A DNA stretch of 63,671 nucleotides, filler included, from Dimorphilus gyrociliatus (lineage: Eukaryota > Animalia > Annelida): the NCBI GenBank assembly GCA_904063045.1. It is 5 parts of 5 records of this genome, joined end to end, with 100 filler letters (N's around TTAATTAATTAA, not from the genome) between each part and the next. Parts side by side here need not be neighbours in the genome. Positions count along the whole stretch, not along the records: positions 18,568 to 35,725 come from CAJFCJ010000219.1; 4 more parts are not named here. The stretch is one strand, 5' to 3'. The notes under the pieces are model-generated. The model saw only the letters and a program-made list of their open reading frames with translations, searched no databases and was not told the DNA's origin. Within the stretch, counting starts at the first letter, position 1; each line of letters begins with the position of its first letter. Shown here in pieces: positions 18,568-35,725 of this stretch. The position numbers and the translations under genes were made by a program.

Positions 18568-18569
18568 TC

Positions 18570-19427
18570 TTCCATTCAGATTGTAATGAAGCCATCTTAA
18601 GAGGTATTGTATCAACAAAAGCTAATTCCTATGAATTTAGAACTGTTTCTGATCTTGAATCACTTCTAAAGACAAAGTTTAGTGGAGAGAGAAGATACTT
18701 TGTAATAACAGAAGGAATATTTAGAAACACAGGTAAGTGTTTTGATATAAAAAATATAGCCAAACTTAAGAAAGAATATCCATTCTGGTTTATTTTGGAT
18801 GATTCTTTGTCTTTCTCATTTTTAGAATTACAGAAAGAAGCGGTTGACATTTTGATTGGAAGTCTTTCGTACTCTTTGTGCAGTGCGGGTGGCTTTGTAG
18901 CAGGAAGTGAACATTCTGTGGATTATCAAAGGCTGTTGTCACCCTCTTACTGTTTCTCTGCATCTCTACCAGCATTTCTTACTAAAAACGCACTTCTTAA
19001 CTTAAAAAAAGACTTAAAAAGCCGAAGAAAAGCAATTTTAGAAAAAGTAAAACACTTTCATGAAAAATTCAACAACGTTTTCTTAAACGAAACAGAACAC
19101 AAAAAAAACCACGTCCAATTTAACACAAGAAGCACAAAAGTAGAATATAAAGTAACACAGCACTCCAAACCATTTAAAGAATCTAATTTTAAAATAGTAT
19201 CAGATGTAAAATCACCAACAATAGTTCTAAGAAGAAGTAGAAGTGGCCTAAAAAACAAAAAAGAATATCAAAACCTTTTAGTTATAAAAAATTTATTGAA
19301 AAAAAGAGGATTTAAGGTTGGAATTTTGATGAACCCGAGGGCAGGATTAAGAATTAATATAAGTGATGGAGTGGAGATAGAAAGTATTGATAAGATTGTT
19401 GAAGTGTTTAGTGAGATTTGTTTTTAG
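18570..19427 (+). CDS. LCB1: Serine palmitoyltransferase subunit 1 (5'-partial at contig edge)
   Basis: Frame is open from 18570: YFVITEGIFRNTG, FILDDSLSF, DILIGSLSYSLCSAGGFVAG, YQRLLSPSYCFSASLP. No PLP lysine, as expected for LCB1. Confidence 0.85.
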   Translation, partial: FHSDCNEAILRGIVSTKANSYEFRTVSDLESLLKTKFSGERRYFVITEGIFRNTGKCFDIKNIAKLKKEYPFWFILDDSLSFSFLELQKEAVDILIGSLSYSLCSAGGFVAGSEHSVDYQRLLSPSYCFSASLPAFLTKNALLNLKKDLKSRRKAILEKVKHFHEKFNNVFLNETEHKKNHVQFNTRSTKVEYKVTQHSKPFKESNFKIVSDVKSPTIVLRRSRSGLKNKKEYQNLLVIKNLLKKRGFKVGILMNPRAGLRINISDGVEIESIDKIVEVFSEICF

Positions 19428-19451
19428 AAAAATTCTTTATTTTTTAAGAAA

Positions 19452-19575
19452 ATTGAAAAATTCAAAAATTCAAAAAATTCAAAAATTCAAAAAATTCAAA
19501 AAATTCAAAAAATTTAAAAATTCAAAAATTCAAAAATTCAAAAAATTCAAAAATTCAAAAATTCAAAAATTGAAA
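19452..19575 (+). repeat. (AAAATTCA/AAAAATTCA)n tandem repeat between convergent genes
   Basis: About 13 units of 8-9 bp. Confidence 0.95.
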
Positions 19576-19617
19576 AAATTAGAAAAATTGAAATTCTCTA
19601 TTTTTAAGAAAATAATT

Positions 19618-19899
19618 TTAATTTCGATTCTGCTGAACATAAAGTGTAAGTTCATCTAATTTCTTTTTAGTTCTTTTCAAATTACCTAACCTTCTCTTTA
19701 TAAATCTTTTAGCTTTCTTTTCTTCATCACGTCTAATTAATTCAATAGCTCTTAATTCGTATGGAGAAAAACCACTTATTTCTTTTACAACTTCTCTAGC
19801 TAGAATAGCAGATTGAGAAGGTTCTTTAACTTTTTTAGTAGGTTTAGGGAGTTTAGTAACTTTGTGGTGGAGAAGTCTTGCTTTTTTGTTGACTATCAT
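19618..19899 (-). CDS. RPL36: 60S ribosomal protein eL36, short and intronless
   Basis: HKVTK...REVVKEISGFSPYELRAIELIR....KKAKRFIKRRLG; CCC motif just before the ATG. Confidence 0.95.
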   Translation of the reverse strand: MIVNKKARLLHHKVTKLPKPTKKVKEPSQSAILAREVVKEISGFSPYELRAIELIRRDEEKKAKRFIKRRLGNLKRTKKKLDELTLYVQQNRN

Positions 19900-31943: not shown

Positions 31944-31989
31944 TATTTTTGGTATAATTTAGTATTTAAATTAGTTTTCATTCAATTGT

Positions 31990-32330
31990 AAAATGATCAA
32001 TATCTCCTTTTCTATTCATCGATTATAATAATGAAAAGCTCTTCTATATGTTTATCAATAATCTTTCTTAGGTGTTAATGAATCTCTTTTTTTTATTACA
32101 ACTTCATAAAAACATCTTTTACTACAATTTAAAATAAGACAGCTACTTTAAAACTGCTTATTACACCACCTAACATAATTACTTCGCTAATTAACAGCAC
32201 TCTCATCAATTTGTATGGTAAACCAGGGCCTCCTATTTTATTTAAAATGTCATGCGTAATTTTACTTCTAATTATACCTATGGTTGTTTTATAGAATATA
32301 TACCACATGCTCAATTATATATAATTGGTG
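31990..32330 (-). mobile_element. Second, heavily decayed Merlin/ISXO2-like remnant
   Basis: KIGGPGL, then after a shift IQIDESAVN; later KIIDKHIEE..IIIDE*KG. Confidence 0.65.
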
Positions 32331-32782
32331 TTTTCTAAGCTATTCGAGAATTATGTAGTTTTTTTTAAAGATGCTTATATCTTCCTGTTGAAAACCGAGT
32401 TATTTCTCATTTTCGAGCTACTGAAGCCACATTTTTTGATTTATACATCTACATTTAAGCCATTTATATTACCGAATACTACTAAATTTCTATCAGTTTT
32501 ACATTTTTTACAAAATGATTTTTTTAAAATATTGAATTAAGTCAACCAATAAAAAAAATTTTTCGGATCAATCTCGTTATAAACATTAAGAGGATCATAG
32601 CCTCTAATTCTAAAAGGCACTTAAAACACCCTTTAAATTTTTTTGTATTATATTTAGCTAAAATAAAATTTTAAAAAAAAATTCTAGGTTTAATCAAAAA
32701 AGTAGTCTTCTTGCATATTTATTGCCCAATTTTTACAAAGTATGCTTTTTAGTACTGCTGTTTTAGACATAATTTTAATCAA

Positions 32783-34245
32783 TTAGCTTTTATCTTTGCT
32801 TTTAACTCTTTTTGATTTCTTAGAACCATTTCCTTTCTTATTACCGCTTTCGCCTTTTTTTACTTCAGCTTCTTCTGTAACATCTTCGTCTTGCTCTACT
32901 TCTGGCTGTTCTTTAACGTCTTCATCCTGCTTTAGTTCAGCTTCTTCTTTAACGTATTCATCCTGCTTCACTTCTGGTTGTTGTTTAACATTGTCATCCT
33001 GCTTTAGTTCAGCTTCTTCTTTAACGTATTCATCCTGCTTTACTTCTGGTTGTTGTTTAACATTATCATCTTGCTTTACCTCAGCTTCTTCTGTGAATTT
33101 CATCCTGCTTCACTTCTGGTTGTTGTTTAACATTGTCATCCTGCTTTATTTCGATTCTTCTTAACGTCTTCGTCTTGCTTTACTTCTGGTTGTTGTTTAA
33201 CATTGTCATTTTGCTTTATTTCAGCTTCTTCTGTAACGTCTTCGTCTTGCTTTAGTTCAGCTTCTTCTTGTAACGTCTTCGTCTTGCTTTAGTTCAGCTT
33301 CTTCTTTAACGTATTCATCCTGCTTTATTCGGTTTCTTCTTTAACATCTTCATCTTGCTTTAGTTCAGCTTCTTCTGTAACATTGTCATCTTGCTTTAGT
33401 TCAGCTTCTTCTTTAATGTCTTCGTCTTGCTTTACCTCAGCCTCTTCTGTGACATTTTCATCCTGCTTCACTTCTGGTTGTTGTTTAACATTGTCATCCT
33501 GCTTTATTTCGATTTCTTCTATAACGTCTTCGTCTTGCTTTACTTCTGGTTGTTGTTTAACATTGTCACCTTGCTTTACTTCTGGTTGTTGTTTAACGTC
33601 TTCATCCTGCTTTAGTTCAGCTTCTTCTTTAACGTCTTCATCCTGCTTTAGTTCGGTTTCTTCTTTAACATCTTCGTCTTGCTTTAGTTCAGCTTCTTCT
33701 GTAACATTGTCACCTTGCTTTACTTCTGGTTGTTGTTTAACATCTTCGTCTTGCTTTAGTTCAGCTTCTTCTGTAACATTGTCACCTTGCTTTAATTCGG
33801 TTTCTTCTGTAACATCTTCGTCTTGCTCTACTTCTAGCTGTTCTTTAACGTCTTCGTCTTGCTTTAGTTCAGCCTCTTCTGTAACATTAGTACCTCTTTT
33901 ACTATTATCATTTTGTTTTAGCTCAGATTTGGTTTCTTTAGCATCTGCCTTCAAATCAGTGGTTTCCTCTTTTTGTTCAGCTACTTTTTCTTTATTCTCT
34001 TGCTTTTCTTTGTTAGTAGCTGAGTTATTAGTTTTAGATTTCTTTTTGGAAGGATTTTCATGAGTATTTTGATTTGCATCCACATTTGTTGAAGCAACAT
34101 TGCTATTAGTAGATCGTGGATTACTTGTTTGTGAATTTTGTTGGCGACTCCTGATAGTTCTAGCTCCTAAGAAAGCTATAAGAGCTAGTAACAAAATACA
34201 AAACACAGCATACACATATGTTGAAATAGAGTTCTTTTCTTTCAT
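32783..34245 (-). CDS. N-terminally anchored Glu/Gln-rich 12-aa repeat protein, long paralogue (1-nt indels within 33100-33330)
   Basis: N-terminus homologous to 28249-28659; about 30 units of EEAELKQDEDVK / QQPEVKQDDNVK (36 bp); Lys-rich tail in ORF 32783-33103; CCC before the ATG. Confidence 0.85.
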
Positions 34246-35153
34246 ACCTGGGTATAATATTTTTTTTTCTTAAAAAAAAAAGAATCAAAAAAGGAAAATA
34301 TTTACGTTTACGAAAATAGAGTACATTCAGTACATTTAAAAGTTTTATCACTAGAATAACAAAATGCTTTTTTGAGTAAATACTCATTATAGATATCCAT
34401 TTATAAGAAATGAATCCGTCATAACATAAGGTGTGTAAAGTAAGCTTCCAAATTCGAGTTAAAGAAGGAAAGTCACCTTATATCTATTTTTTATAGTAAC
34501 TGCTAAAAATGGATTATTAGTTGACAAAAGAAGTCTTAAATCTTGATTCTTGCTTTGATAATTAACAACAAGTCTTAATTTGTTTAAAAAGCAGAAAAAT
34601 CAATTTTTATGTTTTTAATTTTTCTAAAATAATTTGCAATCAAATTTTATGATGTTATCTTGTTTTTAACTTTTAACGTTAGATCTAAAGAACTTGCAAA
34701 ATATCAAATCAAATAAAAAAGATAATAAAAATAGCAATAGCTTGGAAATATGTAACTGAAAAGTAATTATCAAAAGATTACAAAATATTATGTTTCTTTC
34801 TTTGATAAACATATTACAATAAAGTTTATTATCACGTATAATTAATAGAAATTCAACTATATTAATTTAATTATGAAAAGACTCAACTGCTTGAATATTT
34901 ATCTATACAACATGTTCTTATGCAATAAACTAGAAAAATAAACTATAGTGCTTGATTCACTTTTTATTAAACCATAAAACACGCTTGAATACAAAAATCT
35001 AAATTAGTTAAACTGGTTAATGCAATAATAGTTTTTTTGCTTATAAAATTGTTTTAATTGATTTTTTAGGTTTTATTTTATGTCAATCTATCAATTTCTT
35101 ATACTTTATTGAATAAATAAATCTACTATAAAAAAATATTTTATATTCATCCC

Positions 35154-35725
35154 ATGATAATTTATAATAAGAATGAATTTCTATTAGAAAATAAAACAAT
35201 TATAATAAAAGAAAACAATTTAGTTAGAAAATTGGATTTAAAGACACTTTTAGACGTAAAACATTCATTAAATATAAAGTTTTATTCAAATTACAACTTG
35301 GTATTTACTCTCAATAATTCTTTATTTTTTTATATTGATAGAGAATTTGTATTAGTAAAGACCTTTAATAATTTTATAAATTGCTTCTTCGTCGATAAAC
35401 ATTTTTGTGCGGTCGGAATTGAAAATGAAGTTATAGTTTATTACCTAAAAATAGTAAACAAAAAAGTAATCCTGACTAAGAAGTTTAGATATTCTCATAC
35501 TGCTACTGTAAAGAGTGTAGCTACTAATGGTATTGAGACTTATGTATTGGATGAAAGTAATAGGTTATGTGTGTATCCGAGGGAGAAGTTCTATGATAAT
35601 ATCATGCTTATTGGTTATCGAGATTTCTTATTTGCATATGAAAAAGGAAAACTATATTGTTTAGACCAGCAATTATCGGCAATAGGAAAATGTCCACAGA
35701 TAGAATCCATTGAGTTCGGAAACCA
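35154..35725 (+). CDS. Hypothetical beta-propeller/WD40-like protein, 3'-partial
   Basis: Beta-strand-like runs and a WD-like segment FRYSHTATVKSVATNG; CCC directly before the ATG; runs into the spacer. Confidence 0.45.

Follow-up and report, generated by a model that had tools for sequence, protein, structure and literature searches.

Most described microsporidian species are represented by small subunit (SSU) rDNA alone, and, to our knowledge, the microsporidia of marine invertebrates (crustaceans and fish apart) are almost unsampled genomically. Recognising parasite contigs in the sequencing data of another organism has become established practice, and forty new microsporidian genomes were recovered as cobionts from host genome projects (PMC12558613) in a study whose main text names no annelid, polychaete or marine host. 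Here we report a finding of the same kind. We analysed positions 18568-35725 (17,158 nt, record CAJFCJ010000219.1) of a stretch of 63,671 nt, hereafter the window, in which five parts of assembly GCA_904063045.1 are joined end to end. This piece is very probably a nuclear-genome contig of a core (canonical) microsporidian, an obligate intracellular parasite that was co-sequenced and co-assembled with another organism. The lineage in the window has no close relative among the RPB1 proteins of public sets.

Two described parasites come closest to this locus. In Vavraia culicis subsp. floridensis (Glugeida / Pleistophoridae; GL877444.1), the genes for LCB1 (serine palmitoyltransferase subunit 1), the ribosomal protein RPL36e and RPB1 (the largest subunit of RNA polymerase II) follow one another in the same order as in the window, RPL36 likewise has 93 amino acids (aa) and the same N-terminus, and neither RPB1 has a Pfam heptad-repeat match. 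V. culicis is also the nearest named lineage in our RPB1 tree, along with a protein that we call P0027 (from Logan SRR21609248 contig 261). The differences are nonetheless large: identity is 46% in RPB1, 49% over the full length (93 aa) of RPL36 and 39% over 235 aa of LCB1; the strand of RPL36 is reversed; G+C is 48.5% at the Vavraia locus as against 27% in our piece; and synteny stops after RPB1, where the window continues into AT-rich repeats and transposons. The second relative, the crayfish parasite Astathelohania contejeani (an “orphan lineage”), has the top-scoring and most identical RPB1 (51% by BLASTP, 56% over 1172 aligned columns), yet it is not the window's sister in the tree.

The left 6 kb of the piece is probably an ancestral microsporidian housekeeping block, LCB1 - RPL36 - RPB1, in which the genes each appear intronless, lie a short distance apart and have a triple-C motif at the promoter or start. 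Its three genes are as follows.

18568-19427 (+): LCB1-type gene (serine palmitoyltransferase subunit 1), C-terminal 285 codons, truncated by the left edge; open reading frame (ORF) 18570-19427
19618-19899 (-): RPL36e, 93 aa; Pfam PF01158 at 1.7e-20; CCC 4 nt before the ATG
20149-24635 (+): RPB1, RNA polymerase II largest subunit; Pfam Rpb1 domains 1-5 and 7

A reading of the DNA made earlier without database searches (the sequence-only reading) had named a compact intronless LCB1, a 93-aa RPL36 and RPB1, and had taken the piece for a microsporidian fragment. All three genes are real, although RPB1 is split in the window into two ORFs by a 1-base frameshift. The part of LCB1 that is present is open in frame from its first bases, with 0 stops and 0 introns, and matches the class I/II aminotransferase family (Pfam PF00155, Aminotran_1_2; 4.7e-12). 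In a search of PDB sequences it scored 4.6e-17 against LCB1/SPTLC1 versus 1e-5 against LCB2, and we would accordingly call it closer to LCB1/SPTLC1 than to LCB2/SPTLC2 by sequence similarity. By eye, a Tyr in its GSLSYSL stretch stands at what we take to be the position of the PLP-binding lysine of the LCB2 motif. RPL36e is convergent to LCB1, and RPB1 is divergent from RPL36. The two short spacers that flank RPL36 (19444-19593 and 19907-20110) are made up of microsatellite repeats of the AAAATTCA type together with a 37-nt unit that is duplicated; they are not minimal, in contrast to those of the most compact microsporidian genomes.

To find relatives of RPB1, we performed a word search with a 1302-aa piece of the protein in a set of 5.8 billion proteins, considering RPB1s of at least 716 aa. 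The first 20 matches with a named source were all from Microsporidia, the best being A. contejeani and Encephalitozoon (51% each) and Nosema (49%), while fungi, Rozella and Paramicrosporidium started about 180 bits below them. No RPB1 in this set exceeded 51% identity, and a scan of JGI metagenome contigs with RPB1 found distant RPB1s only (at most 43% identity) and no close relative. A word search with RPL36 gave 6 candidates, none of them scoring, which says little since the protein is short and divergent. Housekeeping proteins of the piece are about 40-56% identical to those of any sequenced microsporidian. Because no RPB1 lies above the 51% mark, no sequenced, annotated genome is close to this lineage.

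Phylogeny of RPB1 was one of the checks that the sequence-only reading had proposed, and it bore out the microsporidian origin. We built a quick tree of 56 rows and a careful tree of 37 rows by 1439 columns under LG+C20+F+G4. In the careful tree, the window's RPB1 falls inside core Microsporidia (support 100/100) and above Nematocida, in a clade without Nematocida (100/99); it is sister to V. culicis plus P0027 (93/95), and Spraguea joins next to form a four-row clade (93/96). The quick tree placed it in the same way. In approximately unbiased (AU) tests, a position of the window's RPB1 outside core Microsporidia was rejected (delta lnL 64.4, p 0.002). An origin of this RPB1 from fungi or from nucleocytoplasmic large DNA viruses (NCLDV) is rejected, as the microsporidian matches stand about 180 bits above the fungal ones and the window's RPB1 is nested in Microsporidia.

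Gene order gave a second line of evidence. We compared the neighbourhood of RPB1 in six relatives. V. culicis has aminotransferase - two small ORFs - RPL36e - RPB1 and the P0027 contig has aminotransferase - RPL36e - RPB1, while in Nematocida major the order is aminotransferase (+) - RPL36e (-) - two genes - RPB1 (+), with the same orientations as in the window. The order LCB1-RPL36-RPB1 was absent around RPB1 in Encephalitozoon intestinalis and Binucleata daphniae, and in Astathelohania no gene is called upstream of RPB1, so that no LCB1 or RPL36 is called adjoining it. From these comparisons, LCB1-RPL36-RPB1 is a conserved microsporidian microsynteny and an independent support for the origin of the piece. 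The P0027 locus, whose RPB1 is the sister of that of V. culicis in the tree, has 31% G+C and reads GATA factor - LCB1 - RPL36 - RPB1; its source is apparently one more unlabelled parasite within a public run.

The third line of evidence is the start motif. The triple-C motif is described as specific to microsporidia, a metchnikovellid included (PMC5381614). The sequence-only reading had remarked on CCC before start codons, and of 9 candidate ATGs we found 8 to be preceded by CCC at a distance of 0-12 nt: those of RPL36, RPB1, the two membrane-anchored repeat genes, the two transposase ORFs and the ORFs at 25193 and 35154. The ninth candidate, at 33103, is internal to a repeat array and has none. 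CCC occurs only 35-36 times on each strand of the 17,158 nt, a frequency at which chance alone would put the motif before about 3% of starts. Another of the early remarks did not hold, namely that the transposons lack CpG depletion. The observed/expected ratio of CpG was 0.55 over the whole piece. Taken singly, RPB1 (0.46), the Merlin element (0.50), the Tc1 element (0.60) and the repeat genes (0.67) all show a moderate depletion (0.46-0.67), which is no stronger in the transposons than in the genes.

RPB1 consists in the window of two ORFs, 20149-20724 and 20727-24635, separated by the 1-base frameshift at an A-run (20701-20704) where the two frames meet. We compared positions 20100-24690 with contigs from four other public runs (contig depths 94, 238, 4.4 and 7.4), and all four carry one extra A behind 20700. 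With the extra A, RPB1 is a single ORF of 1495 codons. Because these four runs restore the frame, we attribute the frameshift to an error in the window's assembly, or to a variant private to it, and not to gene decay. The window thus has, at 20698-20705, one A fewer in a homopolymer than the contigs of four independent runs. Other frame breaks also lie beside homopolymers, an A8 near 29511-29519 and a C5 near 30862-30866, and may be the same type of error; the window's assembly probably has homopolymer indels. The C-terminal tail of RPB1 (24400-24635) contains a single YSPTSAE unit and, beside it, several SP units that are degenerate; it has no canonical YSPTSPS heptads and no match to the heptad-repeat family PF05001. 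In precomputed Pfam lists, the RPB1s of Vavraia, Spraguea and Nematocida likewise have no heptad-repeat match, and by this measure the extreme reduction of the tail is common to all of them.

Words of the window's RPB1 occur in 11 public runs from 7 studies. The share of words found was 0.84-0.96 in four samples of one 2020 study labelled organism A, 0.95 in one 2017 run of organism B, 0.35 in two runs of organism C, 0.22 in one marine sediment metagenome and 0.05-0.16 in three marine metatranscriptome libraries. Occurrence in marine sediment and marine RNA libraries points to a marine parasite. In a 2024 run that is also labelled organism A and has 273 Mb of contigs, RPB1 words are almost absent, which points to organism A as a host whose infection varies. 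At the level of contigs, run X1 has one of 4451 nt with 2 mismatches to the window (depth 94), and run X2 has contigs with 0-2 mismatches at depths of 238-417. Run X6 is about 98% identical, and of its 30 listed differing sites, 28 are synonymous third positions. Such an excess marks purifying selection in living populations, as expected of a living gene and not of a fossil insert. X1 and X2 also hold further contigs of 4.6-5.1 kb that match only short conserved RPB1 motifs (21054-23347) at less than 90% identity; in X1 their depth is 94.7, next to 94.4 for RPB1. The parasite's RPA1/RPC1 paralogues are their probable identity; this would speak for X1 being evenly covered genomic DNA.

The microsporidian origin is thus strongly supported by four independent kinds of evidence: the RPB1 matches and tree, the conserved gene order, the triple-C motif, and purifying selection between strains. 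Several points weigh against this reading or against its finer placement. The AU tests were run under LG+G4 only. They rejected a sister position to Astathelohania marginally (delta lnL 33.9, p 0.047) and did not reject a position just outside Vavraia plus Spraguea (p 0.23). The end branch of the window's RPB1 is long (0.93), and the support for its sister relationship to Vavraia (93/95) is below a strict threshold. The RPB1 tree held no sequences of metchnikovellids, Pseudoloma, Glugea or Trachipleistophora. On the 17-kb piece there are no SSU rRNA, polar tube or spore wall genes. Finally, run X9, an RNA library, has contigs of 683 nt and 509 nt that are about 99% identical to the window, and these would be compatible with expression but are no proof of transcription. 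Because the position just outside Vavraia plus Spraguea survives the AU test, we would keep the placement to a lineage in or beside Glugeida (the Vavraia/Spraguea group) and make it no more precise.

One alternative is that the organism is already known by a name of its own, from a sequence or a description. One of the labels with near-identical DNA would then be the microsporidian itself, and our finding a re-detection and not an unsampled parasite. The organism A (four samples of the 2020 study) and organism B (2017) runs speak for this, as they hold 84-96% of the RPB1 words in contigs with 0-2 mismatches at depths of 94-417, and the small total sizes of their contigs (36 and 60 Mb) imply that much of these runs belongs to the parasite. 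However, there is no annotated RPB1 of at least 716 aa above 51% identity among the 5.8 billion proteins, look-ups of the exact products of RPL36 and two lineage-specific ORFs found no record, and the near absence of words from the 2024 organism A run fits the label of a host with variable infection better than the label of a parasite; we consider a re-detection unlikely. A second alternative is a metchnikovellid. These microsporidia branch early and are hyperparasites, and the piece would then stem from one that inhabits the gregarines in the gut of a marine annelid, and not from a parasite of the animal itself. Marine polychaete gregarines do harbour metchnikovellids, whose genomes are small and AT-biased (32.6% G+C in M. 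incurvata; PMC6190962) and which share the triple-C motif (PMC5381614), and none was present in our tree. Against this, metchnikovellids are basal to most Microsporidia in the published phylogenomics as given in PMC6190962, whereas a position of the window's RPB1 outside the core was rejected (AU p 0.002) and this RPB1 is nested above Nematocida (100/99), with an RPL36 directly adjoining RPB1 as in Vavraia and P0027. On these grounds a metchnikovellid origin appears unlikely, with a slim chance at best.

The frameshifted RPB1 and the two decayed transposons could also be read as signs of microsporidian DNA integrated in an animal chromosome, horizontally transferred or a fossil insert, with no living parasite involved. 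Yet the RPB1 frameshift is absent from the contigs of four other runs, LCB1, RPL36 and the remainder of RPB1 are open, 28/30 of the between-strain differences are synonymous, and the same sequence recurs in runs of several organism labels as well as in environmental libraries from the sea. In addition, no animal-like sequence was found on the piece, and both of its ends lie inside parasite-type genes. Integration is very unlikely, to the point of being scarcely credible. Returning to a parasite co-sequenced with another organism, we are more tentative about the wider picture. The piece may represent a deep, genome-less marine lineage in or next to Glugeida with several hosts (three labels hold it or a strain diverged by about 2%), present in marine sediment DNA and plankton RNA libraries, ecologically common, unrecognised and endowed with its own family of membrane-anchored acidic-repeat proteins; for this picture as a whole, we would put the chances at a little under even.

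With an RPB1 only about 50% identical to that of any sequenced genome, the lineage would fill in a long branch so far missing near Glugeida, and it would flag parasite contigs that the host assembly should either drop or label. Users of public data are concerned as well, since runs with other organism names contain this parasite in abundance. A cobiont contig in a genome project is a well-established type of finding and leaves the understanding of microsporidian genomes unchanged.

We also characterized the piece as a whole. Its G+C content is 27% overall; the left third has about 30-34%, the middle falls to 16-25%, and the stretch over 24.6-28.2 kb, where we found AT-rich tandem repeats and one small ORF only, has 16-21%. 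No tRNA was found in 18568-35725, and an Rfam scan of the piece gave no rRNA and no credible match. One Rfam match, to mir-186 (18972-19054, minus strand), lies inside the LCB1 coding region and reaches 31 bits against a 70-bit cutoff (E 0.014); we took it as chance. The right 11 kb is an AT-rich, repeat-rich region with two decayed DNA transposons (Merlin/IS1595 and Tc1/mariner) and putatively lineage-specific genes for membrane-anchored acidic-repeat proteins, with the following features.

24693-25072 (no strand): AT-rich tandem repeats with 81-, 46- and 32-nt units, from a tandem repeat finder; downstream of RPB1
25193-25510 (+): ORF of 105 aa, hydrophobic anchor at the N-terminus; ATG preceded by CCC at 12 nt; no significant Pfam match
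28249-28659 (-): 136-aa protein with an N-terminal membrane anchor or signal sequence and an acidic 10-aa (30-nt) repeat; CCC motif
29049-30182 (-): Merlin/IS1595-superfamily DNA transposon of 1134 bp; imperfect inverted ends of 39 nt
30475-31943 (-): Tc1/mariner-like DNA transposon, 1469 bp, with CACTAT... inverted ends and TA flanks on both sides
32783-34245 (-): gene for a membrane-anchored protein in which an acidic repeat of 36 nt (12 aa) occurs about 28 times; ORFs 33325-34245 and 32783-33103 in different frames
35154-35725 (+): gene start, first 190 codons, truncated by the right edge; CCC directly before the ATG

The sequence-only reading had spoken of Merlin-like transposases in the plural. 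One element is indeed of the Merlin/IS1595 type, but the second is Tc1/mariner-like, and both are broken. Transposase homology and terminal inverted repeats are shared with the known Merlin/IS1595 (ISXO2-like, PF12762) and Tc1/mariner systems; the window's copies differ in being broken and in having the microsporidian CCC before the ATG of both ORFs. The 213-aa ORF of the Merlin element has 39 homologues, animal Merlin-type proteins included, 37 of them with PF12762 (IS1595/ISXO2-like); the best is 38% identical. Neither this ORF nor the short Tc1 ORFs gave a direct Pfam match. By tblastn, a transposase of about 310 aa could be mapped in two frames (P0121 aa 7-211 and 220-316), broken by a frameshift in or beside the A8 run and by an in-frame TAA. 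No 8-9-bp target site duplication is visible at the Merlin element, and its flanks differ. Its nearest relatives are unnamed environmental proteins, so the comparison would indicate no recent exchange with an animal. A second Merlin copy, suspected by eye at 32129-32314, found no support in tblastn.

In the Tc1/mariner-like element, the stretch 30857-31054 matches the catalytic domain of the Sleeping Beauty transposase (1e-13 in the PDB sequence search), and CCC precedes an ATG at 31681. Three-frame translation revealed at least 3 frameshifts and at least 3 in-frame stops, and because its ORF is decayed, this copy is not active. Some of the transposon frameshifts that fall in homopolymers could be assembly errors like that of RPB1, but the in-frame stops are not so explained.

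The ORF at 25193-25510 is a probable lineage-specific gene. The first 54 aa of the protein encoded at 28249-28659 are 50% identical to the N-terminus of the 33325-34245 product (E 3e-11), and the two are paralogues. The 36-nt array at 32859-33887 spans the gap between the two ORFs of the 32783-34245 gene, and CCC stands before the upstream ATG only; this is either one broken gene or an assembly indel. Together, 28249-28659, 32783-34245 and 25193-25510 make up a small gene family, in which a hydrophobic anchor at the N-terminus leads into tandem repeats of 10- or 12-aa units that are acidic and rich in lysine/glutamine. The acidic-repeat proteins are candidate secreted or surface proteins of the parasite.

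The ORF that starts at 35154 weakly resembles the N-terminal beta-propeller of a 776-aa protein of Nematocida major (L086:12259-14589; BLASTP E 5e-9, 31% identity over 54 aa). That protein has weak Pfam matches to Vps41-type beta-propellers and is encoded 1.5 kb downstream of the Nematocida RPB1. An atlas hint at VPS11/VPS41 propellers for the window's ORF (score 0.87) is a lead only. Because the Nematocida relative of this ORF sits just downstream of RPB1, the transposon-rich 10 kb of the window may be an insertion into an older RPB1 neighbourhood.

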